Assembly (NCBI RefSeq): GCF_001194135.2
Contig: NC_068993.1
Coordinates: 61,521,896 to 61,585,895, forward strand
Origin: Octopus bimaculoides
Taxonomy: Eukaryota
Reading direction: 5' to 3'
Length of the DNA stretch: 64,000 nucleotides
The position numbers and the translations under genes were made by a program. The stretch's first letter is position 1. Each line of letters begins with the position of its first letter. Shown piece after piece: positions 5,436-57,849 of this stretch. The notes under the pieces are model-generated. The model worked only from the letters and a program-made list of their open reading frames with translations, was not told the origin of the DNA and ran no database searches.

Positions 5436-6117
5436 TTCTTAACAATGAAATCTATCAGTATTTCAACTCACAATATATGAATATGCTTGTTGTTTTCTTT
5501 TCTATAATTTATTTCAAACAAATATTCCTTCAACTATATGTCCATCAACTGTACTGCAAAGTCCTTTATAAATGTAGCTAAGTCCATTTAGAATGCAAAA
5601 TTATTTTGTATTTCCAGACATGGATTATAAAAGTGTTGCTAATAATCTCACTCAGACGAAACCTTTCACCATAATTCACCAGATTTTAGATAAACATGGT
5701 CGTATTTGTTCCATATAACATTTTCCCTTTGTCTCTAAAAGATGATAAATATTGATGATGCTTCTGATGTAAAAAAATGATTTTCTATACCAGTGTCACA
5801 TAGTATTCTGAAATAATAAAGAAAACATTATAAGACAGAGAGGATATTTAAACAGAGTAGAATCCACAGCAGAAATTTAATTAATTTTCTATACTGAGAA
5901 ATTGTAAAAGTAAACCTTTATCTGGATTTATTCAGTGTATTTGAACATTTTAACGTGTATATTTATATTATCAAAGTATAATAAATCTCTACAAAAATGT
6001 ATTGAGCAATCCTGCAGTTTAGGCTAAATTGTTTTTGTAACTTGACATAAAAGCAGACATAACTGCATAAACAAGTGCCATTCCCTTAATTGTTGCATAA
6101 AGAAGTTTCAATCTCTC

Positions 6118-6465
6118 ATGGCGCTCCGTCAGTTACGACGACGAGGGTTCCAGTTGATCCAATCAACAGAACAGCCTGCTTGTGAAATTAACGTGCAAGT
6201 GGCTGAGCACTCCACAGATATGTGAACCCTTAACGTAGTTCTCGGAGATATTCAGCGTGACACCGAGTGTGACAAGGCTGGCCCCTTTGAAATACAGGTA
6301 CAACAGAAACAGGAAGAAAGAGTGAGAGAAAGTTGTAGTGAAAGAGTACAGCAGGGTTCACCCCCCTCCTCTTGCTGGAGCCTCGTAGAGCTGTAGGTGT
6401 TTTCGCTCAATAAACACAACGTCCAGTCTGGGAATCAAAACCATGAGTCTACTGCCCTAACCACA
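6118..6465 (-). mobile_element. tRNA-derived SINE family C
   Basis: Reverse complement of the head at 8834 plus the tail at 45058-45340 (…gctgaatatccccgagaactacgttaagggt…ggaaccctcgtcgtcgtaac). Confidence 0.82.
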
Positions 6466-32650: not shown

Positions 32651-34697
32651 GTGAGTATTCTCAAGGCAAAGTTTTAAAATATTTCATTGGTATATTTCAA
32701 AGGCATATATAATTAGGGGCAGCTTTTCTTTTTTAGTATCGTTGTATTTCATACAAAAGAAATTACGATTCTATGAAATTCTATCCGAAAACTTCAGTTT
32801 TTCTTAATTCTGCTTCTCTTCTTCTTCTTGTGTCCGTTTCCTTCCCCATGGCAGCTATTCAGAAACTATTTAGTTTTCAGCATTTCATTTTCTTTCTGTT
32901 CCTTTTTTTATATATTCCCTCCTACATCACTACATTTCTTGCCCGTCCATAGTAACATTAAGTTCGGCGAATAGAACTCCTATTTACTCCTTTTACACAT
33001 TTCAAGCATGGTCATTTTCCCGACGGGGATGTGGTCCCGTCTTCTTTTCTACTTACTAATACTTCACTCGATGGAGTTCTGGGCGGAGCTGAAGAATACG
33101 TACACCACCCGTTTTCGGCGTAACAAAAACCCTAACCCTAACCAACGTGTGTATTCTTTACTTTCGCCGAGTTCTGATCGAAGTACATCATCTAATCCGT
33201 CATAACTCCTATTTTTTGAATTTTCAGAATAACTTAGCGAATTTGTGTTCTACACACTGGACATCGTACGATTATGCAAATAAAAAAATATATATAATTT
33301 TCCTCCCCCACCAATCCTAAAACTTCCTCTCTTTTTTTCCAGTTTAAAAAAGAAAAACATCAGTTTTAAACCACGGACAATCCGAATCTACCATTTGTTT
33401 TTAACTAGTTCCTTTGATTTAAGGGAGATTTAGCTGTTGTTTCTAGCACATCTCACAACCTTCCTCGTTTATTTGTCACTTTGACGTATTTATGCTTTTC
33501 GATATTTTTCTCCCTGTAAACACATTTAATGGAATGATGATGTGGAAGTAACACACAGGTTTTGTTTAGCTTAAGGGTGGTCCATTGCCGGGATTTAAGC
33601 AAAAACAAAAAAAAAAATTTTTTATACCCCCCACCCAGCCTGCACCAAGCGAGTGTGTGTGGTGTAAGAAAAAACATTTACTCAGATAGAACTATGCTAT
33701 TAAAATATATTATTTTTTTACATAATTTTTTAAAATCATTGTCCCAGTTTCAAGTTTTCCAATACTGGTATGATCAATATGGATTAAGTCTAATTTGAGC
33801 ATCTGTAAGGATGGTTGGGGGTGAAATGATTTTAATCAAAAAATTTTTTTTACATAATCATACAAGATAGAATTTGCAAAGCACAAATTTGCAAAAATTT
33901 TCTGAAAATATAAAAAACTAGAAAAGTAATGATTGGTTTATGTGATGTGTTCCAATCCAGAATCGATAAGAAACATCCCCCTCTCCCTACACACACTATC
34001 GGCTTCTCAGTTGGCATCTGCCAAATCCACTCAGGGTTTCGGTTGATCTTGGGCTGTAGCAGAAAACACTTACCCAAGGTGCCACACAGTGGAACTAAAC
34101 CAAGAATCTTGTAGTTAGGAAGTAAACTTCCTACCACACAGCCATGCCTACACCTTAGTGGAGGAATTCAGATGTTCAAGTAAAAGAAATTAAATTTCTG
34201 CTATAGAATCTTTGCACTTAAAATAATTGTCCTCTCCATCTTATTCTCTTTTTTATTATTATTTCAGGATACTTGCTGACGTTGACATTAAAATATATTT
34301 ACATCAGAAGAATCTGCAACATTTATCATCTTTTAAAGACAAAGGAATATGTTATACAGAAGAAATATCACCATGCTTACATAAATTTGGTGAATTGTGG
34401 TGAAAGGTTTCTTCTGGGTGAAAATATTAGCAACACTTTCTGTAATTCACTGTCTGGAATAAGTACAAAATAATTTTGCATTCTAAATAGACTTTAGATA
34501 AACTGATAAAGAACTTTGCTGCATTTTTAGATATTTTGGTTAAAGATCATGGTTGATAGAAATACAGCAGAAGGAATATTTGTTATGAATACATTATAAA
34601 AAAAGGAAAATGAGAAGCATATGCATATATTCTGGTAAGAGAAGCAAATTTTTGGTTAAATGAATTAAAAGATTGATTTTTCTTTCATTCTGAAGAG

Positions 34698-35879
34698 ATG
34701 GCAAAAGATTTTGGAAAGTCTTCTTATGAATGTGATATCTGTGAAAAATCATTCACGACAAAGAGTTATCTAACTGTTCACAAACGTCTTCATACCGGAG
34801 AAAAACCATATCTCTGTGAAACTTGTGGTAAAACGTTCTCTCGGAATGATAAGTTAAATGTTCACAAATGCATTAAGAGAAGAGAGAAGCAATATAATTT
34901 TTCTTTTACTAAAGAGATGACAAAAATGTTAGAAAACTCATCCTATGAATGTTGTATCTGTAAAAAGTTATTCACTACAAAAGGTCATCTTACTACTCAT
35001 GTACGCATTCATACAGGAGAGAAACCATATCACTGTGATATCTGTGGTAAAGCATTCTCTCGAACTGATGAATTAACTACTCACAAACGTGTTCATACAG
35101 GAGAGAAACCATATGAATGTGATATCTGTGGTCAATCATTCACTCGTAAAGATATTTTAACTACACACAGACGTATTCATACAGGAGAGAAACCATATAA
35201 GTGTGATATGTGCAGTAAATCATTTGCTAAAAGTACTAACTTAACTGATCACAAACGCATTCATACTGGAGAAAAACCATACCATTGTGATTTCTGTGGT
35301 AGATCATTCAATCAAAATAACCAGTTAATTAAGCACAAACGTATTCATACTGGAGAAAAGCCATTTCACTGTAATATCTGTGGTGAGTCATTCTCTCGAA
35401 ATGATAAGTTAAATGTTCACAAACGCTCTCATACAGGAGAGAAACCATATCAGTGTGATATCTGTGGTAAATCATTCCCTCAAAATAGTGGCTTGACTAG
35501 ACACAAACGTATTCATACTGGAGAAAAGCCATTTCATTGTGATATTTGTGGTAAATCATTCCCTCGAAGTAACGCCTTAACTGCACACACACGTACTCAT
35601 ACTGGAGAAAAACCATATCATTGTGATATTTGTGGTAAAGCATTTTCTCAAAGTCCTGCTGTAACTGTGCACAAACGCATTCATACTGGTGAAAACCCAT
35701 ATCATTGTGATATCTGTGGTAAGGCATTTTCTCAAAGCCCTGCTGTAGTTGTACACAGACGTATTCATACTGGGGAAAACCCATATTATTGTGATATTTG
35801 TGACAAATCATTTCCTCAAAGAAATTCCTTGATTGATCACAAACGTATTCATACTGAAGAAAATCTATTCCATTGTTGA
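34698..35879 (+). CDS. ZF7: C2H2 zinc-finger protein (13 fingers, duplicated start module)
   Basis: 393-aa ORF; a two-finger module precedes a second start-like module ([12 protein letters not shown] at 34917) and 11 more fingers. Confidence 0.93.
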
Positions 35880-43211: not shown

Positions 43212-43263
43212 ATGGATGAAACTCAAGAATCTGAAGTAAAAACAATAAAAGAAGAAATTACAC
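43212..43263 (+). CDS. SLC22-like: SLC22-family transporter, probable coding exon 1 (MDETQESEVKTIKEEIT)
   Basis: Acceptor ttcttacag|g at 43158/43159, ATG at 43212, donor c|gtaaat at 43264. Phase 1 fits the acceptor at 44315/44316 (an alternative donor at 43236 with acceptor 44326 would also be in frame). Total CDS comes to 1635 nt (544 aa). Confidence 0.55.
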
Positions 43264-43345
43264 GTAAATAATTATTTTTAATATAACCGGATCCTGATTA
43301 AGATGTGAAATTTTACTGACTTATAAATATATTTTTTTAAATACA

Positions 43346-43509
43346 GGCGCAGGAGTGGCTGTGTGGTAAGTAGCTTGCTTACCAACCACATGGTTCCGGG
43401 TTCAGTCCCACTGCGTGGCACCTTGGGCAAGTGATCTTCTACAATAGCCTCGGGCCGACCAAAGCCTTGTGAGTGGATTTAGTAGACGGAAACTGAAAAG
43501 AAGCCCGTC

Positions 43510-43599
<90 letters not shown>

Positions 43600-43780
43600 A
43601 ACATCGCTTTACAACCGATGCTGGTGTGTTTACGTCACCGTTACTTAGCGGTTCGGTAAACGAGACCGATAGAATAAGTATTAGGCCTACAAAGAATAAG
43701 TTCTGGGGTCGATTTGCTCGACTAAAGACGGTGCTCCAGCATGACCGCAGTCAAAATAACTGAAACAAGTAAAAGAATAA
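43346..43780 (+). mobile_element. SINE family A, young full-length copy in SLC22 intron 1
   Basis: tRNA-like head with A/B-box-like motifs, (TA)n(TG)n core, 3' module; multiple copies in the window (also head fragments at 22059-22111, 33975-34152, 48350-48491, 50928-51085 and a tail at 60640-60752, all -). Confidence 0.88.
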
Positions 43781-44315
43781 AATGTTCTAGTTATATTAAC
43801 AAGGTGTATTTTGTTTTCAAATATTTCTCAGACGTTTAGCTTAGTGTTTCAACCTGCTGCTCAATTCTATCAATACCATAATTTATTATCTGATTTACAT
43901 CTCATCTGAAGAATATTCTGAAGAGTATTCAACGTAATTTAATTGAGTTCCAAATGCTGATTACCGCACATACTTTTGTAGGTACATGTTTTACTGTAAC
44001 AAATATTAAATGAATTCTTATCATTTTGACTTGTGTTGCAATTTATATTCAGCCAGAAACATGATGTTTAATTTTAGTTCAAATTTAAAGAAAACAAAAG
44101 ATGAAGAGAGATAAGAAAACAACAAAGAGGTGTATTAGTTTGACGCTCAGGAAGAAAGGAAAAGTATTTGTCGTTTCGAGCCGACGTTCTTCGACAGAAA
44201 GGGATGAGAGGGGGAAAAAAATAGGGAGAGAACGAAAAATCGGAGACAGAAAAAATGTGTAGGGATTAACGGTTTAACATGATGGAATAACTGGAATTCA
44301 TCTTCCATATTTCAG

Positions 44316-44683
44316 CTTTTTCACAGCGGGATATCACACAACTAATAGAAAAATGTGGCTTTGGACCTTTCCAATGCTGGTTCTACACTTTTTTGTTTGC
44401 GACAAGGCTTTTTACAGTGATGAGTGCAATGAGTTTAGCATTTATTACTGCAAATGTTCCTTTCGTGTGCTATCCTCCAAATTATGATACTTCAGCAATT
44501 CCTGCAGCTTTTACAGAGAATGAATATCTACAACTGTTTCAACCTGAAGACGATCACTGTTCTCTGTATAACAACACTTTAACTGAAATATTTCGTTCAA
44601 CGTCAACTGTCAATTTATCGAAAATACCATGTTCTTATGGACGGAAATTTCTAACAGAGAATTTTTCTACAGTTGTAAGCGAG
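44316..44683 (+). CDS. SLC22-like: SLC22-family transporter exon 2 (TM1 and large extracellular loop)
   Basis: Reads ...DITQLIEKCGFGPFQCWFY...CYPPNY...DHCSLYNN...CSYGRKFLTENFSTVVSE then |gtgagt. Shows the SLC22 N-terminal G.FG.FQ motif, loop cysteines and the T.VSE motif. Confidence 0.88.
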
Positions 44684-44895
44684 GTGAGTCAAAGAATGAA
44701 GCAATTACTGTAAAACAAGAGGTAATGTCACGTTATTTCATCGTTGCTACTGACCGTCTGTATATTGCAGGTACGTTACCAGCGAAACCGTTATTTTCCA
44801 ATGACTTATTACGCTTACATAATCGGGAAAAGCATGATTATTTCATAAGAAATCATATTTCTGATACACAGAGCAAATACATGAATCAATTCTAC

Positions 44896-44896
<1 letters not shown>

Positions 44897-44937
<41 letters not shown>

Positions 44938-44949
44938 GTCTGTCGGTCG

Positions 44950-45000
<51 letters not shown>
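44897..45000. repeat. (TCTA)n followed by (TC)n microsatellite
   Basis: Seen directly. Confidence 0.95.
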
Positions 45001-45003
<3 letters not shown>

Positions 45004-45057
45004 GCGCGCGTGTATGTCTCTAAAGCATACATATATACAGACATGCATATATGCATT

Positions 45058-45340
45058 TACTTTCACCACAACTTTCTCTCACTGTTTCTGTTGTACCTGT
45101 ATTTCAAAGGGTCAGTCTTGTCACACTGTGTGTCACGCAGAATCTCCCCGAGAACTACGTTAAAGGTACACTTGTCTGTGGAGTGCTCAGCCACTTGTCC
45201 GTTAATTTCACGAGCTGGCTGTTCCGTTGATCGGATCANNNNNNNNNNTGCTCAGCCACTTGTCCGTTAATTTCACGAGCTGGCTGTTCCGTTGATCGGA
45301 TCAACTGGAACCCTCGTCGTCGTAACCGACGGAGTGCCAC
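45058..45340 (+). mobile_element. SINE family C, 3' half
   Basis: Aligns with 6118-6350 (reverse); ~52 bp duplicated across a 10-N gap. Confidence 0.8.
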
Positions 45341-45504
45341 GATATAAGTATAATTAACGGGAAGTGATCTCATTCTGTACTTTCTAACCAAATGAAAAAT
45401 AATAACGATGATTACATTACAGATGGTACACGTTGAAATTAAGCAAAATTGAGCAATAATCTTGACTTTGTAATATTATCTATTTCATATTTATTTTGTT
45501 ATAG

Positions 45505-45608
45505 TTTGATTTAGTGTGTGGGAAAAAATGGTTAAAATCCACATTGCAGTCCGTTTATTTTGTCGGTTATCTTATTGGATCAATCATATTTGGTGTTTTA
45601 TCTGATAG
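45505..45608 (+). CDS. SLC22-like: SLC22-family transporter exon 3
   Basis: atag|FDLVCGKKWLKSTLQSVYFVGYLIGSIIFGVLSD(R)|gtaagc; 104 nt; DLVC signature. Confidence 0.93.
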
Positions 45609-45899
45609 GTAAGCTATATTTCAATAAATATTTTTCTTAAACATAATATTCAGTCTTAAATGTATATTCAGTTTATAGTTATTGATTTTGGTCACTTTCA
45701 TGATTTATGCATTCTACCAGAGTTCTTTCCTTTAGTGTGCGAGAATAATTTCCATTTAATAGTAGAATCAGTCATCGTCAGAAGAAAATATCTTCTTGAG
45801 TGCATGAAATATATTGCTGATATTTCCTCTTCTTGATTATGAAGTTAGAAATGGTGTAGTATTAGCTCAGACAAACAAGACAACTCATCCCGTCTATAT

Positions 45900-46480
45900 T
45901 GATTTTGAATTTTGGCACCAGGTTAGCAATTTTAGAGGAGGAGGAAAGTTGATATCATCGATCCCAGTGTCCAACTGGCACTTGTCTTACCGACCTCGAA
46001 AGAATAAATGGCAAAGTCGACCGCGACGGGATTTGAACGCAGAATGCTAACGATTCTGCCTTGTCACCACGTCTATGTTGGTTACAAATTTTGTTACAAA
46101 GCAAGCGATTTTAGAGGAGGAACGAAGGAAATAAGTCGATTGCATAGACACCAGTTTTTAACTGGTACATGTCTTGTTGATCCTGAAAGGATGAAAGGCG
46201 AAATCGATCTCGGTGGAATTTGAACTCAGATCGTGAAGGCGGATGTAATGCCGCTAAAAAGCTTGCCTGGTACGCTAAACGATTCTGTCAGCTCACTGTG
46301 TTGTCATCACGTGTGTATTCGTTTCTACTCTGGCACAAGGCCCGAAATTCTGGGGGATGGGACCAGTCGATTAGATTGACCCCAGTACGCAACTGGTACT
46401 TAACTTATCGACCCCAAAAGGATGAAAGGCAAAGTCGACCTCGACGGAATTTGAACTCAGAACGTAAAGACAGACGAAAA
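45900..46480 (-). mobile_element. Three tandem SINE family B copies in SLC22 intron 3
   Basis: Copies at about 45900-46065, 46080-46300 and 46325-46480. Confidence 0.8.
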
Positions 46481-46505
46481 AGTATGTCTTCTACTATAGC
46501 CATAC

Positions 46506-46589
46506 GGGCATATGGCGTAGTGGTTAAGAGCGGGGCTACTAATCCCAAGATTCCGAGTGCGATTCCAGGCAGTGACCTGAATAATAATG

Positions 46590-46644
<55 letters not shown>

Positions 46645-46810
46645 CTACATCGAAAACTACCTTAGGAATGAGAACCCAGGTTCGAAATTTCCCCAAGACA
46701 CCTGATGAAGGCTGGAGGGTATATCAGCCGAAACGTTGTGTTAACAACAAATAAGATGATGACAAAATTCCGTCAATTATAAATAATGTAAATAATGTAA
46801 ATAATGTACA
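46506..46810 (+). mobile_element. SINE-like element: tRNA head + (AAT)n + Penelope-like tail
   Basis: tggcgtagtggttaag A box, gagtgcgattcc B-box-like motif, then cctgatgaaggctggagggtatatcagccgaaacgttg and (aataatgta)3. Confidence 0.65.
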
Positions 46811-47139
46811 GAATGATATTGATGTCAGATCGGGAACTTGAAACATATTTTCAGGCGAAGATTAAGGTTTTATTTAAGAGAATTGATGATATTGATGAAT
46901 AATAATTTGAGATGTCAAACTGAATGAAATGGGTGTATTGTTTATTATGAAGAGAGTGAAACCAAGTGATGACGTCTCCTCTGCATTTCCAGAGCAGAAG
47001 CTTAGGGTTAGTTCTAACCAGGGGTAGAATACGGTCAATGATACATTTACTAATTCGAACTAAGTCGGATTTAGTAGAACTTAACTAATTTTTACATTTA
47101 CGTATCAATGATTAATTTACATTTCTGTTTTTCGTGTAG

Positions 47140-47294
47140 ATTTGGTCGGAAACTTACTTTTTTTATGTCGAACACATTCTTTGCTGTTTGTGGAATCAGC
47201 AAAATCTTCATGCCATCATCCATCGCGTTTATGATTTTCCATTGTATGCAAGCTTCTGGTTTTATGGGTATTTCAATCAGTACTTATGCACTCA
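47140..47294 (+). CDS. SLC22-like: SLC22-family transporter exon 4
   Basis: gtag|(R)FGRKLTFFMSNTFFAVCGISKIF...STYAL|gtaagt; 155 nt; completes MFS motif A (G.LSDRFGRK). Confidence 0.92.
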
Positions 47295-48124
47295 GTAAGT
47301 TATTCCAAAAAAATATTTTCCCCGCAAACTTTTATATGGATTTATTTGAATAGTGTATTTTTCTCTTGTTTATGCAACAAAACTCAAACACACATATATC
47401 TATAGAACATGCGCACATTATACATTATAATATTTATTTTATGGTATATATTATATAATATATATTATATATACGCGTGTACATATATGCGCATGTTCAT
47501 AACTTACATAAGCAACATACATGCATACATACATACGTACATACATACATACATACGTACGTACATAATATATACATACATACATGCATATATAAATACA
47601 ATATGAGCGAAGAAATATTGATTAAAATGAATAGCATAAATAAATACTTAAGGCAGGCCTTGAAGGAAGATAGTATGCCATTGAAGAGGTTGCGAATAGC
47701 AGCCACTCAAGAATTCGCGAATAGCGACGAAAGGACTTTGACTTACAAACAACCGGTTGGTTGTTTAATCAGCACATTAAGCTTGTCTTTTAAGGAAAAG
47801 GACAGGCTTATTGTTTGGAGATAAGGTGACAACCGTGGACACTGTGTTTCTTGCTCAAAAGCCATCGTCAGCACAATAATTGTCTAACATCATCTCCAGT
47901 AGCCAAAGGACTTAGAATCATATAAAACAGAGTAGAAGCTTAATCTTATTAATATTAACCATATCTTGGTTCCTCGTTGACAAGCGTCTGATATTAAAGG
48001 ATATTAAATGATGTAATATGCAAACTAGTATGTTCTTCGATACTACAAGATTTGGTGTGTACATAAACAGATTGGTTATAATATTATGTATATGTATTTA
48101 TATAATATACATAATATATATAGT

Positions 48125-48325
48125 GCTTTCAAATTTTGGCACAAGGCCAGCAATTTTGGAGAGAGGGTAAGTCGATTACATCAATCCAAGAGCTCAAATG
48201 ATACTTTTTTTTATCGATCTCGAAAGGATGTAAGGCAAAGTTGACCTCGGCAGAACTTGAACTCAGAACGTAAAGATGGACGAAATGTCGCTAAGTATTT
48301 TGCCCGGCGTGCTAACGATTCTACG
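48125..48325 (-). mobile_element. SINE family B
   Basis: Family B core and tail. Confidence 0.8.
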
Positions 48326-48729
48326 AACCCTCAAACACGCACACACAGAGGACAGGTTTCAACACAGTTTTCGCCTACCAAATTCACTCTCAAGGTCGAC
48401 CCAGGGCTAAAGTAGAAGACACTTTCTCAAGACTGAACCTAAAGCTACATGATTGTAAAACAAACTTCTTAACCACAACGCCATGCCTGTGACTGTTTGT
48501 GCATTGATATACACATTCTTAAAAATAAGCACACATACACTCACATATGTGTATTTGAATGTGCACCTATGTAAAGATATATTGATATTAAAATTTTAGT
48601 TGTCAGTGAAATTAACTGTTTTAATTATCAGACGAACTTAACTCATCTATATAACAATATTTCCCCATTATTTTATTTTTCAGAACTCAAAAGTACTTGT
48701 TGCATTTATGTTTATTTTATATTTCACAG

Positions 48730-48898
48730 ACTTAGAATTTGCCCCTTCAAGGTACCGTACACCTCTTAGTTTTGTGCATATGTCCATGTATACATTCACT
48801 TCGATGCTTTTACCAGCGTTCGCCTATGCCATACCTAACTGGCATTATTTAGAATTGACGGTGTGTCTTCTACCCCTGGCTAATTGTTTCCTTTGGAA
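48730..48898 (+). CDS. SLC22-like: SLC22-family transporter exon 5
   Basis: acag|(N)LEFAPSRYR...AYAIPNWHYLEL...FLW|gtgagt; 169 nt; splice phases consistent. Confidence 0.9.
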
Positions 48899-49883
48899 GT
48901 GAGTTAAGTATATTTTTCATTTTCTTCTTATACAAAATGAGACTAAATTCTTCAATTTCTCGGCAGATTTCTTCTATTTATTCGATTTAAATTTACCAAA
49001 AAAAAAAAAAAGAAAAAGAAAAAGTACTTGTTCTGAGCATTTTCGTAATTTGACTTTACGTTATTCATTTTTCCTTCAACTTACGAGAGACATTTCTGCA
49101 TCTTTTGCGGTTTTGGATAAATTGAAACCAGAAAACACCCACGGCATTACTAAGTCCCGGTGGTGAGGTAGAATGGATTCACTGCCATTCTCACATCTTC
49201 ACATCCTATATATAAGCAAAATATAAGTATAGGAATTTTAAAACCACATTCATTAGTATACAGGTGTTTCCGCTATGAGGAAGTGTTTTAATATTTAAAC
49301 GCTGTTTCAATAAAGGAACGCTTCATGTTAAAGCTCTGGGTGTACAATTCCTTATAGCAGAAATAACTGCAAGCTAATAAACATAATTAAGTTTTGTCAT
49401 TTTGTCATTCATATAGTATATGTATATATATATNNNNNNNNNNNNNNNNNNNNNNNNNNNNNNNNNNNNNNNNNNNNNNNNNNNNNNNNNNNNNNNNNNN
49501 NNNNNNNNNNNNNNNNNNNNNNNNNNNNNNNNNNNNNNNNNNNNNNNNNNNNNNNNNNNNNNNNNNNNNNNNNNNNNNNNNNNNNNNNNNNNNNNNNNNN
49601 NNNNNNNNNNNNNNNNNNNNNNNNNNNNNNNNNNNNNNNNNNNNNNNNNNNNNNNNNNNNNNNNNNNNNNNNNNNNNNNNNNNNNNNNNNNNNNNNNNNN
49701 NNNNNNNNNNNNNNNNNNNNNNNNNNNNNNNNNNNNNNNNNNNNNNNNNNNNNNNNATATATATGTAATTATTTGCCTGCAATAACTACAATATTAATGT
49801 GCATTAAATTTATTAGTAGAATTCATATTTTTGACAAACTCTATGTAAAGTGCTTTTTTTTCTTCTAACAAAACATGTTTCAG

Positions 49884-50132
49884 TTGTCTTCTCGAATCTC
49901 CAAGGTGGCTTATCGGCAGGAAACGCTTTCGAGAAACAAAAGAACTTCTTGAGAAAATGATGATGAAAAATAATCTCGATCATCAGGAGGTGTTCAATGT
50001 TTTTTGGGAGGATATAACGAAAGAAAGAAAACCGGTCAAAAGAAGATGGTCCTCGGAAAAGACTTATAGTTTTATCGATCTATTTAAGACGGTCCAAATG
50101 GCTACGATCACGATTAATATTTGCTTTAGTTG
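49884..50132 (+). CDS. SLC22-like: SLC22-family transporter exon 6
   Basis: ttcag|..CLLESPRWLIGRKR...TYSFIDLFKTVQMATITINICFS(W)|gtaaat; ESPRWL and DLF motifs; 249 nt. Confidence 0.93.
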
Positions 50133-50199
50133 GTAAATATCTACCATGTATTTAGACGCCTGATCGCATTTTGGTGTTATTCTATTTGTTGTAAATGTT

Positions 50200-50415
50200 G
50201 GTTTCAAATTTTGGCACAAGGCCAGTAATTTCGAGGCAGGGGATAAGTCGATTACATAGACGCCAGTACTCAATTGGTACTTACTTTATCGATCCCGAAA
50301 GGATAGAAAGTAAAGTCGGCCTCGGCGGAATTTGAACGCAGAACGTAAAGATGGACGAAATGCTGCTAAGCATTTTGCCCGTTGTGCTTACGATCCTGCT
50401 AGCTCGTCGCCTTAC
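50200..50415 (-). mobile_element. SINE family B
   Basis: Family B core and tail. Confidence 0.8.
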
Positions 50416-50892
50416 TTGCTGTAAAATATTCAGGTGAACTGAAGGCTATCCTAGTTTAAACATTATTGCAGAGCTAAAAGAGATTTCAAAGAAATGCATT
50501 TTGAAGCAATGGCAACGCCTGCGATTTGTAGCAATCCGGACAACATTTTGTCAGAAAATTTATGAGGATGACCAAAAAATTTTATAAAAGCAATACGAGT
50601 TTTTGTATTACGAATCAAATTCATAGTTAATGCTCAATGTAGTTGTAAAACAGTAATGGGCAAACTGCGGCCCACGGGACTTTATGAATGGCACATAAAA
50701 CGAAAAATTACCTTGAAATTTTGAAGTGATGCAGTTGAGAAAGATTGCCCATGTCTCTTATAATAAAATGATTGAGGCATGAAATATGGCAAAGTGTATT
50801 ATAGTAACAAACTGCACAGCAGCGATTGTAACTGATCATAGAATAAAATTTGATCATGATCATATTGGTTTCAAATTTTGGCACAAGGCCAG

Positions 50893-50930
<38 letters not shown>

Positions 50931-51261
50931 CGAGCTTCCACACATTTTCCGTCTACTAAATTCACTCACAAGGCATTGGTTGGCTCGAGGCTATAGTTCA
51001 AGACACTTATCCAATGTGCCACGTAAGGAAACTAAAACCGAAACCAGGTGGTTACATAGCGAGCTTCTTCGCCCCACATCCATGTTTTCGTCTATTATGA
51101 AATATATAAACATCACTCTAATGTATTTTATATTTGAATGTTTAATAGAAAAAATACCCCTCAAAATATTTTCTTTAATGGTAAATGAAATCCAACATTT
51201 GCAATACAAATGAAAAGAGCATATATTTATTTATGTAATATGTAGTTGTTTTATTTTACAG

Positions 51262-51476
51262 GTGCGTGATCAGTATGCTTTACTACGGAGTAACCCTTAA
51301 TTCTGTTGATATGGCTGGAAATCGTTATGTAAACTTTTTATTAATGATACTCGTGGAGTTTCCCAGCCATATATCTGCTTACTATTTATTTAGATTTTTT
51401 GATCATCGAAAGCCTATTAGTTTCTTTATGACGTTTAGTGGATTGAACTGCATCGTCTCAAATTTTGTAGCCGAAG
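51262..51476 (+). CDS. SLC22-like: SLC22-family transporter exon 7
   Basis: tacag|(W)CVISMLYYGVTLNSVDMAGNRYVNFLLMILVEFP...FVAE|gtaatg; 215 nt. Confidence 0.93.
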
Positions 51477-51560
51477 GTAATGCATAACACTCATTTTATA
51501 TTTTATACACATTGGAAATTAACGTCATCTTATCTGATTATATGTTATTGAAAATGACTA

Positions 51561-51746
51561 CCGTATTTTCCGGCATACAAGTCGAATTTTTCAGCTCCAA
51601 AAGGTAGGCCAATTTATATACCACTACAATTTTGGAGGACCAAATATTCAATGCAACTTGATTTGGAAAGATAGTGACAATCTTTGAATGTCTACTCTAT
51701 ATGTTTATACGATATACAACATCGACTTGTATGGCAGAAATTACGG
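51561..51746. mobile_element. Tc1/mariner (pogo-like) MITE
   Basis: TA|ccgtattttccggcatacaagtcga ... tcgacttgtatggcagaaattacgg|TG; 25-bp TIRs, 22/25 matching. Confidence 0.75.
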
Positions 51747-51986
51747 TGTTTGCATCAATTTTACTTGAATAATTTCATGTTCAATAAAAGGCTTCACAAT
51801 TATATTACATCACAGTAAAGGGCTAAAAAGGAGCTTTTAACTACAAAGTATTGAATCAAAAATATACCGTAGAGAAGAACTTCTGCTAAATGATAATGTA
51901 TTTCCCGTATTAACAAGCATGATGCTAAAATGTAATATCTGTCAAAAATATATTTCGGTAATAATCTTTGATTTTATTGAATTTAG

Positions 51987-52095
51987 GATCATTTTGGTTT
52001 CCTCTGGCAATGGTTATTCTTGGAAAGTTTGGAATCTCCGCAGCTTTTGCTTCAATTTATCTCTTATCTGCAGAAATATTTCCGACTGTTGTTCG
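51987..52095 (+). CDS. SLC22-like: SLC22-family transporter exon 8
   Basis: ttag|(G)SFWFPLAMVILGKFGISAAFASIYLLSAEIFPTVV(R)|gtaagt; E.FPT..R motif; 109 nt. Confidence 0.93.
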
Positions 52096-52559
52096 GTAAG
52101 TTTTTTTCAAATCTCTGTGAAAATGTGAGCATTACAATTAGCCAAGTCGATATCAATCTAAGCTGTTTTCTGAGTGTAGATAGGTGATGCTACAGTAGTG
52201 TGTCTGTAGCAAAAACATAACTCTAATTTCTTTTCACCTCATCAAACTGTCACTATTCATTGATCAGTTCGAATTTCTCGATATTGATTAAGACGATCAC
52301 AATACGCAGTAATTTACAACAGGAGTATTTATCTTCAGATTAAAAAGCAATGAGTGAATGATACATAAATTCCTTTTGAACATCACCCCAGTTTAACACT
52401 AGATAATTTAGAAATGTAGTTGCAATGATGCACACATAAAGATACTTTGCATAAACTAGATTAACTAAAGATAATGACTCGTCGCTTGTAGGGGTCGTGG
52501 CAATTCAGTATATAATATCCAGTTCCCCATTTCAAGTGGAATTCCAACCACGTTTCGTG

Positions 52560-53080
52560 GTTTGCTACCTCAACAGCTCCTTTATAGGACCCAGTGACTA
52601 AAGACATCATCAGGAGGAACCACATCCGGTTTCGGCCCCTACTCCTCTACCGTTTTCGACGTGGTGCCCCTCACTCACTTTCGGAAGTGTCTTCAACTCT
52701 TGTGTTGAGTGCACTTTTTTTCTCCTTTTTCTTTGGTCTTTTGTTCTTTGGTTTCTTCGATGGCAGCGAGCGAATGACCATCCTGCCAAATTTCCCTTTA
52801 AATACTCGCCGGTAGGCTCCAGGAGCTAGCACGAGCTAACTGTCACGTGACTCTAAGCTTCATTATCCTTGGGTACAGTCCAAATTGCAGTATCCAACAT
52901 TTCAATTTCCCCAGTAATGTTGTTCTGTCAATTGCCTTTAGTCCTTGTTCCACTAAATCGCGTGTTTCTTTGCTTTGTTTCTTATCATTTAGTAAATCTC
53001 TGTACCATCTGCCGAGACTCTTTACTGGTTGTTCTTTCACCGTTGATACATCTTCACCTCTTATCCTGAATTTCACCTCT
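52560..53080 (-). mobile_element. Non-LTR retrotransposon fragment, Hero-like (RT thumb region joined to a 3'-end-like segment), in SLC22 intron 8
   Basis: FRIRGEDVSTVKEQPVKSLGRWY...GLKAIDRTTLLGKLKCWILQFGLYPRIM. I recognise the PVKSLGRWY / GKLK.W..QFG..PR pattern from REL-type (Hero) LINEs. Confidence 0.55.
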
Positions 53081-53607
53081 ATTTGGACAATTTACTTGTT
53101 TTACTTAGATTTTGCATTTCTCTGTGAAACAAACCGTTGTCAGAAAAAGGCTGAATGTCTATAAAATGAATCTGTCATTGACCGTAGAGGGCAGAAGGTG
53201 AAGTATATAGTAATACATTAGCAAACATGATGAAATAAAATGAGAGGTTACTACAACTTAGTCTAGCAATATTCACAAGAGCAGTGAATATTGTAGCTAT
53301 GATTGAAAGAACAGAAAGATGTCATAGATTTCTGCTCTGTTAATGACTTAAAAAATAACAATTTAAAAAGAAACATTTTTATATGCCGCCCTAATAAAAG
53401 TTAGTGTGATGGTTGGACTGTTTTTGATGTGTGAGGAATACTTTTGTACAGGTCATATCTGTGAATATTCAAGCAGTATTTTTTTTTGGTGAGAAAATAT
53501 TCCTATTTTTCAATACTATAGAGTAAACAAAAATAATCAATAATGAGTGACAGACAAACGCTACTAGAAATACGTGGACATTAATCACAATTCTTCTTTT
53601 TTTACAG

Positions 53608-53821
53608 AGGAAATGGGTTAGGTGTTGCTTCAATGTTTGCCCGCTTCGGTAGCATTTTTGCACCTTTTATCCTTCAATTGTCATCTTACGTGAGATGGCT
53701 TCCTCTAAGTGTCTATGGCCTTTTGTCAGTGGTAGCTGGATTATTGCTGTTATGTCTACCAGAAACAAAGCACAGAGATCTACCTCAAACATTTGATGAT
53801 TTGAAAGCGTGGAAAAAATGA
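53608..53821 (+). CDS. SLC22-like: SLC22-family transporter terminal exon 9a
   Basis: tacag|(R)GNGLGVASMFARFGSIFAPF...LPETKHRDLPQTFDDLKAWKK*; LPET..LP.T motif. Confidence 0.93.
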
Positions 53822-54509
53822 AATAGTGATGAAAACGAAGAGGAGTTACGATAAAATAGAAAGGAAAAACAAACAAACAAAAATAAACTGTATATGCTTG
53901 AATTTATTAGGGAATTCTAGTTTCATAATTTTCTATGTTGATTCTTTAAAATAAATCATTTTGAAAACAAAACCAAGTGATTTCGTGTTACTTTTGAAGC
54001 TAATTAGCAAATACTTCATTAAATACTTCATTAAATATTATGCATAGGATTATTGTATCGTTTGTATTTACAATATTTTGTTATACGCATGTTATGTTTA
54101 TGTATATATACGTTCGTGTATGTGTATTTCTCTTTCACTCTCTCTCCGTTTGTCTGTATATATATATATATATATATATGGGAGAATAAACAAATAATAA
54201 CAACAGACGAGGGCAGGTGGTGTAAATAACAAAAGGATATATTAGTATGACGCTCGGGAATACGGAAAGTCTTTGACGTTTCGAGCTACGCTCTTCAACA
54301 GAAAGAATACGGAGACAAGGAGAAAAACACGGAGAAAAAAAATTGAATAGTGTTCAGTCAACGGTCAATCATATATATNNNNNNNNNNNNNNNNNNNNNN
54401 NNNNNNNNNNNNNNNNNNNNNNNNNNNNNNNNNNNNNNNNNNNNNNNNNNNNNNNNNNNNNNNNNNNNNNNNNNNNNNNNNNNNNNNNATATATATATAT
54501 ATATATATA

Positions 54510-54705
54510 TACTGACATGACACTCTGTCGGTTACGAGACGAGGGCTCCAGTTGACCCAATCAATGGAACAGCCTGTTCATGAAATTGAAATGCAAGCGG
54601 CTGAGCACTCCACAGACAGGTGTACCCTTAACGTAGTTCTCAGGGAGATTCAGCGTGACACAGAGTGTGATAAGACTGACCCATTGTAATACAGGTACAA
54701 CTCAT
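54510..54705 (-). mobile_element. SINE family C tail
   Basis: Aligns with 6118-6300. Confidence 0.75.
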
Positions 54706-55118
54706 GATTGGTCTTCGTTGCTAAGGTCACACTTTTGCCTTTTACTAAGAACCATTACTTTGAGCAATGATTGGAAGGTTTGCTTTGGAAATGTTGAAGA
54801 TATGCTGGTGACATGGGTTGTGTGTCACTATAAATGATATGACTCGTTTTTGTTTTCCTCTTCTTTGATTTGTTCTCAGCTGTTGTATGGGTATTTTATT
54901 GTCCGCTGTAAGCCATTTTCTATAAGATACCCTGACCAAAAGAGGGTAAGCATATGAAAGCCAATAGCATCAAATTTTAACTCCAGTTACATCGTAAACC
55001 CTACGTGGGTGTTCGCCATGTCGGAACTTTCGCTAAAATTAGAGCCTGCCCTTCTAAAAAGGAGCGGATACATTAAAAACTTTACTCCTGGGTAGGCTAT
55101 GTTCACGGCTGTAACACT

Positions 55119-55683
55119 GGATCTTTTTTAAAACGGGGGCCACATTTTTCATTAATGTTTTACGTAGTGTTTTTGGTACCGAAAGACTTTCAAACTTCGT
55201 ATACTTATTTATTTAGTGTTATAGAACAGAAAAATATTTTTGTATTCGAATTTATTTCATGTAAAAAATTGTCTTATTTCGATAATTTCAACCAATCACT
55301 GATAAGTATTCAGTTGTTTATATTTACTCCTTTGGCTGATTAAGCGGTGTAAAGCGCATTTAATTTCCATAGCTTCGTTTTGCTTTTTTCTTTTTAAATT
55401 TGCTGTTTTACCCTAACCCTAACCCTAACCCTATCACCGATAGAATTGTTTCAGAATCGTTTGTTTATGTAGTCGGCACTTAATGTATATCGGCTGAATG
55501 GACGTCAGTGATTGGTTGAAATTACAGAAATACGACAACTTTAACATGGAATAACTTAGGGATTTCTTTTTTTTAAAAGAAGACTAAGAGAAAAAGATGT
55601 TTTATATGACACATTCTACCAGTGTTCCAAGTTTCAAAGTGTTTCGTTAATGAAAAATGTGGCCCCCGTTTTAAAAAAGATCC
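55119..55683. mobile_element. MITE-like non-autonomous DNA element with perfect 36-bp TIRs and an internal (CCCTAA)n tract
   Basis: 55119-55154 is the exact reverse complement of 55648-55683; inner 19-bp inverted repeat at 55284-55302 / 55505-55523; telomere-type repeat at 55411-55433. Confidence 0.85.
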
Positions 55684-55950
55684 CTAACGTCATATTGAGT
55701 ACCCTTTCACAACTTAGATATCATTAACACAACGAGCATAACTGATTCAAAAACACAATGGGCGAAACCATTGCTAAATGTCTATAATCTAGTAAGTATA
55801 TGTACATACACGGAATGGAAGCACTAGCAGAATCAAATGAGGTTGTACCGTCTCGGTCGAAAATATCATCCACATAGAACATGTGTAAGTGTGTGTGTGT
55901 GTATATACACACACGTATATGCACATACACTTACATAGAGGCATGCACAC

Positions 55951-56025
<75 letters not shown>

Positions 56026-56488
56026 TATATATATATATCACGGAAACAGCCGAGTGTTTGTTTTGCTTTTGTCGAGTTATATCGAAGGGAATCAAAACTC
56101 TTATACTGCGTCTTTGTCACACGATATTGATAATTATGACACAGATATAAGTACTTAAATATTAACCCTGAAATAGATAAAAACTAGTTCCTTCAAAAAC
56201 CTGCTGGTTATAAATGGTAACTGAGGTAGAACTATTAAGACGTTAAAGTCAATGTGAATGTTTCAATGAACTGTAAGGGGAGATAACACTGTTCATTGTT
56301 ACTGAAAGTAAGTTCAGTTAAAGTGACATCTGAAATCTAAGGGGACGTAACTACACGAACGTCTCATTCTTTTGTAATTCAATCCCTATTCATGCTTCTC
56401 CATTTGCAGTATTTTTCTTTTTTGTTAAATCGTGGACATGCATTTCTGTAAATGCATATGCGTATGTGTGTTTGTGTGTGTGTGTGTG

Positions 56489-56562
<74 letters not shown>

Positions 56563-56909
56563 TGTTAGTGACTAAATGCTAACTAATCAAGAGAACCATT
56601 ATTGCTGTATGTCTTTGAAAATGTAGGCCGGTGAGATGGTTAGCTTTTGTAGATACATGAAAAATACTTCGCCCGTGTAATATCCGGGATTAATACAACG
56701 TTAATAATTTCCGAATAGGAAGCTAATTCTATTCAAGAATTTCTCAATGCTACTGACCAATTAAACTTGATCAATTCTTTATATATTTCCTTTTATTTTG
56801 AAGTGTTTTATTGAACATTCGAAACTATTGAACTATTAAAACAAATGATTAATAGGAGAATTCTAGAAATACTTGTATCTAAATTGATCTAAATTACTTT
56901 TGTTTTCAG

Positions 56910-57183
56910 AGTAAACGGCTTAGGTACAACTTCATTGTTTTCCCGCATCGGCAGTATATTCGCACCGTTCATTCTTTAGCTTTCCTCCTATGTAAAATGG
57001 CTTCCTCTAAGTATCTACGGCGTCCTTTCGGTAGCAGCGGGATTATTGCTGTTGTTATTGCCAGAAACACAGGATAGAGACTTATCGCAAACTCTTGAAG
57101 ATCTGAAGAGTTGGAAAACACAATATTGTGTTAGTAAAAAACCCAGTAACGATGGAAAGAAATTGGAAGAACTATCCTTTTAA
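56910..57183 (+). pseudogene. Duplicated SLC22 terminal exon 9b with an in-frame TAG at 56977-56979 (pseudo-exon or recoded alternative last exon)
   Basis: ttcag|(R)VNGLGTTSLFSRIGSIFAPFIL*LSSYVKWLPLSIYGVLSVAAGLLLLLLPETQDRDLSQTLEDLKSWKTQYCVSKKPSNDGKKLEELSF*. Same splice phase as 9a and no indels. Confidence 0.85.
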
Positions 57184-57849
57184 ATACATTTCAGAACTTC
57201 ACTTTTAAAATGTCTCAACTGATATTTTACAATAAATAATTTTGGAGGCAAAATCAAATGAGTTCATATTTTCTTTTGGACATTTTGTCTAATAAATGCA
57301 TTAAATATTCGATTTGTTTTGAGTCAGCAGTACAAGGCCTGATTTTGAAGGAATAAACCGTGGTTTAATAAATTATCAACAAAATATTGATGTCGCTTCT
57401 ATCACCCTCACAGTTGTATAAGAAAATGTCATTTTGCCAACTGACCATTTAAAACTCTTTAGTCAATGAATTGCATATTTTCTTTCGAATGTAAAACGTT
57501 CGAATTTATATAATTAGATTTTAAAATGTCTTTTAAAGCTCTGGATGAAGACGGGCAATTTTTATTTCTCAACCTCGAAAGTATGACCTCGATTGTATTT
57601 TGAAATTGGAGATTAGAGAACCGGAGAGATTAGTGCAACGCATTTGTATTCGACGCTCTGCCGATGCTGTCAGTACGCCATCTTAAGGTGGAACTGCTAC
57701 GATTTATTTTATCGCCTCTCAATGACGTATATACAATTAGTATGATTCATAGATGGTTATGTTAATTGCACGCCGCTTCCATTGAGCATCTTGGATAGAA
57801 AACTATGTTCATAATTATTTATTTATTACCCATGCGGGGGATGGAGTGG

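Follow-up and report, generated by a model that had tools for sequence, protein, structure and literature searches.

Several kinds of described system lie close to the arrangement considered here. Partial deletion in a tandem gene array can leave truncated pseudogenes, tandem duplication can produce alternative terminal exons, and adenosine-to-inosine (A-to-I) editing can recode a UAG stop codon as Trp. UAG is a good triplet for the editing enzyme ADAR, and coleoids recode heavily. A literature search on the present subject found nothing specific. Here, we analyzed a 64,000-nucleotide (nt) stretch of Octopus bimaculoides DNA (the window; position 1 is 61,521,896 on CM046613.1, assembly GCA_001194135.2), in which an intact SLC22 (organic cation transporter) gene, the window gene, is followed at 3.1 kb by a second version of its last exon that contains one in-frame UAG. 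The original prediction treated this second exon (9b) as a duplicate of the last exon of the gene (9a) and put forward, among other options, an alternative last exon dependent on editing or readthrough of the UAG. Comparison with Octopus sinensis leads us to a different reading, which we hold with good confidence: exon 9b is the pseudogene remains of a neighboring SLC22 gene, namely its final exon, left behind after the other eight exons were lost in O. bimaculoides.

Exon 9b and an intact gene of Octopus sinensis

The features on which this reading depends are given below in window coordinates, with the strand in parentheses. P0001 is the protein of the window gene; P0002, P0005 (XP_029643937.1), and P0022 are SLC22 genes and proteins of O. 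sinensis, from the fetched loci L002, L001, and L003, respectively.

43212-53821 (+): intact SLC22 gene of O. bimaculoides with nine coding exons (43212-43263, 44316-44683, 45505-45608, 47140-47294, 48730-48898, 49884-50132, 51262-51476, 51987-52095, and 53608-53821)
53608-53821 (+): exon 9a, 214 nt, in which the window gene actually ends, encoding transmembrane helices (TM) 11 and 12 and the tail; stop codon TGA at 53819-53821
53822-54179 (+): sequence 3' of the window gene, in which collinearity with the P0002 locus comes to an end at a (TA)n tract
54379-54488 (no strand): intergenic run of 110 N (assembly gap), bordered on both sides by (TA)n; also present in GCA_001194135.2, to whose CM046613.1 the window is identical, N runs included
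56087-56494 (-): intron 8 sequence, a putative remnant, from a third SLC22 gene orthologous to P0022; 90% identity over 412 nt to L003 25200-24792
56460-56548 (no strand): (GT)n tract at the putative deletion junction, where P0022-type intron 8 is joined to P0005-type intron 8; uninterrupted, no N
56549-56909 (+): last ~360 nt of intron 8 of the putatively lost paralogue, with polypyrimidine tract and AG acceptor intact; 94.9% identical, without indels, to L001 26793-27144 (last intron of P0005)
56910-57183 (+): exon 9b, 274 nt, the last and presumably orphaned exon of the P0005 orthologue in O. bimaculoides; 91.2% nt and 83% amino acid (aa) identity to the P0005 last exon
56977-56979 (+): TAG stop in frame, the 23rd codon of 9b, where TM11 ends; CAG at the orthologous O. 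sinensis codon
57184-61359 (+): 3' flank of the putatively lost paralogue, block-wise collinear with the region downstream of P0005; 57184-57402 is 93.6% identical

Exons 9a and 9b align without gaps, with 155 of 214 nt identical (72%), and their peptides are 75% identical (tblastn E = 4e-32); tblastn with both peptides found only these two copies within the window. Both exons encode the TM11-TM12 end of an SLC22 transporter, are read in frame from their second base, and have good acceptors (...tttttttacag|AGG in 9a and ...ttttgttttcag|AGT in 9b). Exons 1 to 8 total 1421 nt, and the end of exon 8 at 52095 leaves two bases of a codon; because 9a and 9b each complete that codon with one base, they share the same splice phase. 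The tail of 9b is 20 codons longer than that of 9a, and its TAG, opposite CAA at 53675-53677 in 9a, is the sole in-frame stop ahead of the terminal TAA. No further SLC22 exon was found on either strand between 53821 and 56910. In all of these respects (a gapless copy in equal phase with a 20-aa extension, a single lesion, and no other exons of a second gene in between), the original description of the two exons was reproduced.

What did not survive is the assignment of both exons to one gene. Among the relatives retrieved, P0005 (569 aa) is the only protein that ends like 9b, including the 20-aa tail ...KKPSNDGKKLEELSF; the two tails read ...WKTQKCINKKPSNDGKKLEELSF in P0005 and ...WKTQYCVSKKPSNDGKKLEELSF in 9b. 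P0005 is encoded by a complete nine-exon gene, and the exact models derived for it show exon lengths and phases equal to those of the window gene and P0002. The match to O. bimaculoides runs well beyond the exon: window 56558-57402 is 93.4% identical to the last intron, last exon, and 3' flank of P0005 with zero indels in 845 nt, an AATAAA at 57231 downstream of 9b is conserved, and collinear blocks downstream extend to window 61359 (L001 35857). The orthologue of the window gene, in turn, is P0002, with 82% aa identity and the same nine-exon structure. Exon 9a is 93.0% identical to its last exon, the intron and 3' flank are collinear around it (window 53245-54179 aligns to L002 28438-29361), and the flank at 53822-54179 alone is 94.5% identical at aligned sites.

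In O. sinensis, the counterparts of 9a and 9b thus belong to separate genes. P0002 and P0005 lie on one strand of CM016871.1, with the P0002 stop at ~64,088,652 and the start of the P0005 last exon at ~64,178,089, ~89 kb apart rather than within one transcription unit; P0022 lies between them on the reverse strand, head-to-head with P0005, and no 9b-like exon occurs within 10 kb downstream of the 9a orthologue. We also considered whether P0005 might be a new gene that arose in O. sinensis around an exon already shared in the ancestor. This was rejected: exons 1 to 8 of P0005 are at most 64% identical to the nearest paralogue, and P0005 is therefore old and not a recent copy around a shared exon. 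By orthology, then, 9b is the last exon of another gene and not a duplicate belonging to the window gene, whether its upstream exons disappeared by deletion or through an assembly fault.

The O. bimaculoides side of the comparison is incomplete in the way expected of a pseudogene fragment. In this assembly, the remaining exons of the parent gene are absent, there being no SLC22 exon in the window beyond the nine of the window gene, and the 9b copy carries a disabling TAG. No retrieved O. bimaculoides protein was orthologous to P0005 (best 64-70%) or P0022 (best 63.5%), compared with 82-88% for true orthologue pairs. Exon 9b alone corresponds to ~16% of an SLC22 protein and cannot form a transporter.

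A separate observation concerns the O. sinensis array itself, where a lone exon-3-like SLC22 fragment lies 4.7 kb after the P0002 stop (L002 33736-33849; 60% identity over 38 aa to P0002 residues 140-170). It is found in no retrieved protein and may be another relic exon of the array.

Junctions upstream of exon 9b and a proposed history

The P0022-type remnant at 56087-56494 matches a segment within the last intron of P0022, ~120 nt from exon 8 of that gene. Its junction with the P0005-type intron stands in place of ~40.7 kb of O. sinensis sequence containing P0022 exons 8 to 1 and P0005 exons 1 to 8, and is located 2 kb to the right of the N gap, in uninterrupted sequence. The O. sinensis breakpoints carry a short (GT)n on the left and GTTTGTGT on the right, which would fit a microhomology-mediated deletion.

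A second difference lies closer to the window gene. Window 54180-56086 (1.9 kb, with the N gap inside) replaces ~47.7 kb of O. sinensis sequence, part of which the gap could hide. It contains the N gap, a short interspersed element (SINE)-like repeat, a foldback element, and 1.2 kb without placement; window 54706-55890 had no match in the 76+ kb of fetched O. sinensis sequence nor elsewhere in the window. The N gap itself is in non-coding DNA, 558 nt past the 9a stop and 2421 nt before 9b, where no reading frame crosses it and it interrupts no exon. When its flanks were compared for a common repeat copy, the right flank proved to be the multi-copy SINE-like repeat and the left flank mostly unique, with one partial match arranged differently.

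The SINE-like repeat is ~190 nt long and occurs at window 54513-54705, ~6117-6304, and ~45090-45339; it has many copies with 75-87% identity, is also present in all three O. sinensis loci, and one copy adjoins the right edge of the N gap. The foldback element, at window 55119-55683, resembles a miniature inverted-repeat transposable element, with perfectly complementary 37-nt outer arms (55119-55155/55647-55683), 49-nt inner arms matching at 82% (55265-55313/55494-55542), and a central telomere-like (CCCTAA)4 at ~55414-55437. No copy of it was found elsewhere in the window or in the fetched O. sinensis loci.

Taken together, these data suggest the following history. At this locus, the common ancestor of O. 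bimaculoides and O. sinensis would have carried no fewer than three SLC22 genes, namely the window gene, one of the P0022 type on the reverse strand, and one of the P0005 type on the forward strand, the last of these with 20 additional aa in the tail of its final exon. Later, in the lineage of O. bimaculoides, ~41 kb (on the O. sinensis scale) was probably deleted between the (GT)n tract and a GT-rich microhomology, and intron 8 of the P0022-type gene became fused to that of the P0005-type gene. The deletion would have removed exons 1 to 8 of both genes, and the last ~360 nt of the P0005-type intron, the last exon, and the 3' flank would have stayed. A second loss or rearrangement of ~48 kb, at a site that includes the N gap, may then have brought the remnant to 3.1 kb behind the window gene. 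Lacking a promoter and upstream exons of its own, the orphaned 9b would subsequently have gained the CAG-to-TAG change and substitutions at residues conserved elsewhere.

Selection, the UAG, and possible use of exon 9b

Synonymous (dS) and non-synonymous (dN) divergence and their ratio (omega = dN/dS) were calculated by the Nei-Gojobori method, as follows.

9a versus 9b (O. bimaculoides last exons): dS 1.37, dN 0.166, omega 0.12; 31.7 synonymous and 23.3 non-synonymous differences
P0002 versus P0005 last exons (O. sinensis paralogues): dS 1.14, omega 0.105
9b versus P0005 last exon (orthologues): dS 0.122, omega 0.67; 16 non-synonymous and 7 synonymous differences, plus the stop
9a versus P0002 last exon (orthologues): dS 0.106, omega 0.62
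P0001 versus P0002, whole coding sequence (intact orthologue pair): dS 0.142, omega 0.60

The excess of synonymous differences between 9a and 9b, which was originally taken to suggest long purifying selection, is a real signal. It does not, however, concern a duplicate exon. Because the two intact last exons of O. sinensis show matching values (dS 1.14, omega 0.105), the signal predates the species split, and the synonymous divergence of 9a and 9b reflects the earlier history of two independent genes, each under constraint. The appearance of 9b as intact except for one stop is what the divergence between the species predicts: the exon is still exon-like only because they differ at ~5-9% of aligned sites. 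The same applies to the 67 codons that remain open beyond the UAG, which are expected at such divergence and are matched by 571 nt of non-coding flank that is also free of indels. Exon 9b is not better conserved than these non-coding flanks (24 differences in 274 nt versus 32 in 571; p = 0.10). Together with an 8:4 split of derived aa changes between 9b and P0005, considered below, this provides two weaker indicators that may point to decay of 9b.

Two further observations concern the pace of evolution in this clade. The intact pair P0001/P0002 evolves fast, with a dN/dS of 0.60 and 82% protein identity next to aligned introns that are 92-95% identical; in this SLC22 clade, constraint is weak or selection is positive. 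Between the O. sinensis paralogues P0002 and P0005, dS is 1.14 in the last exon and 0.55 in exons 1 to 8 (Fisher p = 0.0135), and at the protein level the last exon is the more conserved part (omega 0.105 versus 0.40 in exons 1 to 8). This contrast hints at gene conversion in exons 1 to 8 or at a different history of the last exon.

The UAG itself is most simply described as a plain CAG-to-TAG transition. A recent C>T nonsense change had been listed among the original options, and a CAG codon in a relative had been named there as the sign of such a change; this is the codon found in O. sinensis. The accompanying remark that the UAG stands in an ADAR-favored context is uninformative, since it would hold for any UAG.

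A functional alternative last exon, in which A-to-I editing (UAG to UGG, Trp) or readthrough would yield a full-length product that differs in TM11-12 and has a longer tail, draws on the triplet, on the recoding habit of coleoids, and on the open frame after the stop, the last of which is already accounted for by the low divergence. The site argues otherwise: the UAG is not conserved, CAG being found in a separate O. sinensis gene, and in the 12 close paralogues the position is occupied by Q, H, or L and never by W. A duplex for ADAR was not found locally, where 241 nt around the UAG fold worse than shuffled sequences (z = +1.67; 193 of 200 shuffles as good), nor was there a long-range partner for the UAG region within ~2 kb beyond chance (best -25.4 versus -23.6 +/- 2.7 kcal/mol for shuffled queries). 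For readthrough, the known leaky UAG context is CARYYA, from which the downstream bases CUUUCC of 9b differ. Such a switch, which also requires splicing from exon 8 to 9b, is in our view extremely improbable. The splicing could matter on its own if some window-gene transcripts bypass the poly(A) sites of 9a and capture 9b as a terminal exon. After the gene loss, O. bimaculoides might then make a minor isoform of the window gene cut at the UAG after TM11 and lacking TM12. Its transcript, with the stop in the final exon, would escape nonsense-mediated decay. Editing or polymorphism of the UAG would instead allow an isoform with the TM11-12 and tail of the lost gene. The short distance (3.1 kb), shared strand, intact acceptor, matching phase, and conserved AATAAA at 57231 are all compatible with capture. 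However, recent orthology with P0005 is a simple explanation of the acceptor and poly(A) signal, and 9a has poly(A) signals of its own (AATAAA at 53882 and 53950). All three NCBI isoforms of the window gene, X1 (570 aa), X2 (544 aa), and X3 (487 aa), end in 9a, and neither of two NCBI annotation releases has an isoform joining exon 8 to 9b. The 10 kb that follow 9a contain no protein-coding gene call. Searches with the 9b peptide (X at the stop; no matches) and with exon 8 plus 9b (only unrelated short paralogue fragments) found no protein or fragment with the 9b end or the exon 8-9b junction, in an index incomplete enough that these searches missed P0005 itself, which leaves this negative result with little weight. 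We therefore give capture only a slim chance, and 9b is probably not expressed as coding sequence.

A different objection is that O. bimaculoides keeps the whole P0005-type gene and its reverse neighbor, and that a short-read assembly collapsed or mis-joined the SLC22 array at the (GT)n tract (56460-56548) and at the (TA)n-flanked gap (54379-54488), in which case 9b would be where a neighboring gene ends that is either normal or was disabled recently. The assembly is gap-rich (nine N runs in 64 kb), both rearrangement points are at microsatellites, and fewer genes of this clade are annotated in O. bimaculoides than in O. sinensis, one of the models (P0017, 352 aa) being partial. Against this, the decisive junction is in uninterrupted sequence, and the right O. 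sinensis breakpoint has only GTTTGTGT and no long (GT)n, so that a false join would need a tract specific to O. bimaculoides. Neither O. bimaculoides annotation yielded an orthologue of P0005 or P0022, and the lengths of the N runs in the window, from 10 to 657, suggest read-pair estimates and not placeholders. An assembly artifact is thus unlikely, and the deletion is probably real. Several points nevertheless weigh against the pseudogene reading and should be considered with it. The deletion is taken from one short-read-based assembly, in which a false join inside the ~90-nt (GT)n tract is possible. Window 54180-56086 holds the N gap and 1.2 kb of unmatched sequence, and a ~25-kb O. sinensis interval (64,098,653-64,124,044) lies outside the sampled sequence. 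The protein searches were not exhaustive, as the failure to recover P0005 illustrates, and the intact acceptor, poly(A) signal, and phase make splicing into 9b mechanically possible. Nor is dN/dS proof of decay: with omega at 0.67 for 9b versus P0005 and at 0.60 for the intact pair, the ratio since the split cannot tell a dead exon from a live one. Finally, 8 of the 12 polarized aa differences between 9b and P0005 (the stop included) are derived in 9b and 4 in P0005, a split that is not significant (p = 0.19); A7T, K54Q, and P59S, derived in 9b, fall at sites invariant or nearly so in the 12 paralogues, and the 4 derived in P0005 are at variable sites.

The locus documents turnover of the octopus SLC22 array: compared with O. 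sinensis, O. bimaculoides has apparently lost two genes, and a breakpoint lies at a microsatellite. Viewed in a single species, the orphan exon of a deleted tandem paralogue resembles a duplicated alternative exon under purifying selection, and in a coleoid a single UAG invites an editing story; the comparison shows an inherited selection signal and a simple transition. The case of 9b is one of ordinary gene-family decay. The exon lies outside all protein-coding gene calls of this assembly and merits annotation as a pseudogene fragment.

The window gene and comparison with known systems

Octopus proteins were recovered with the joined exon translations of the window gene. The nine-exon GT/AG model of this gene is unique, and its spliced translation is exactly P0001 (XP_014786502/XP_052828493, "organic cation transporter protein"). 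Isoform X3 lacks exactly exon 6 (49884-50132; 249 nt, in frame), which drops a loop and helix segment between LWK and CVISM; an N gap at 49434-49756 ends 128 nt upstream of this exon. Farther upstream, an intronless open frame of ~400 aa with tandem C2H2 zinc-finger repeats (HTGEKPY linkers) lies at window 34677-35876 (+). It corresponds to a separate 393-aa gene called by NCBI at 34698-35879, within the range of SLC22 isoform X1, which starts at 34610.

By family, the window gene and the parent of 9b are like other SLC22/organic cation transporters of the major facilitator superfamily, with the Sugar_tr/MFS_1 domains, a TM1 that is followed by a large loop, and the motifs ...EIFPTVVR... and ...LPET.... 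Matches to PF00083 (Sugar_tr) and PF07690 (MFS_1) are on record for full-length P0001 and for all of its octopus relatives.

With A-to-I recoding of UAG to Trp, as at the amber/W site of hepatitis delta virus RNA or in coleoid recoding, exon 9b has only the A-in-UAG triplet in common; it differs in having no duplex, a CAG at the site in O. sinensis, and no Trp in the 12 close paralogues. The likeness to alternative or mutually exclusive terminal exons from tandem duplication goes further, since two homologous last exons stand in tandem and in phase, and both have an acceptor as well as a poly(A) signal. Unlike such exons, however, 9a and 9b belong in the relative to two separate genes (dS >1) and were probably united by a deletion, one of them has a stop, and no isoform with 9b is annotated. 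The remaining comparison is with truncated pseudogenes left by partial deletion in tandem arrays. As in these, 9b is a solitary 3' exon that, together with its intron and 3' flank, has its orthologue in a portion of an intact gene of a sister species; its other exons are missing, and it carries a disabling nonsense change and substitutions at conserved residues. In contrast to the usual truncated pseudogene, 9b shares the orientation and phase of an intact paralogue, lies only 3.1 kb behind it, and so mimics a duplicated alternative last exon. At its junction, moreover, intron 8 of one paralogue is connected to the equivalent intron of another that stands head-to-head with it.

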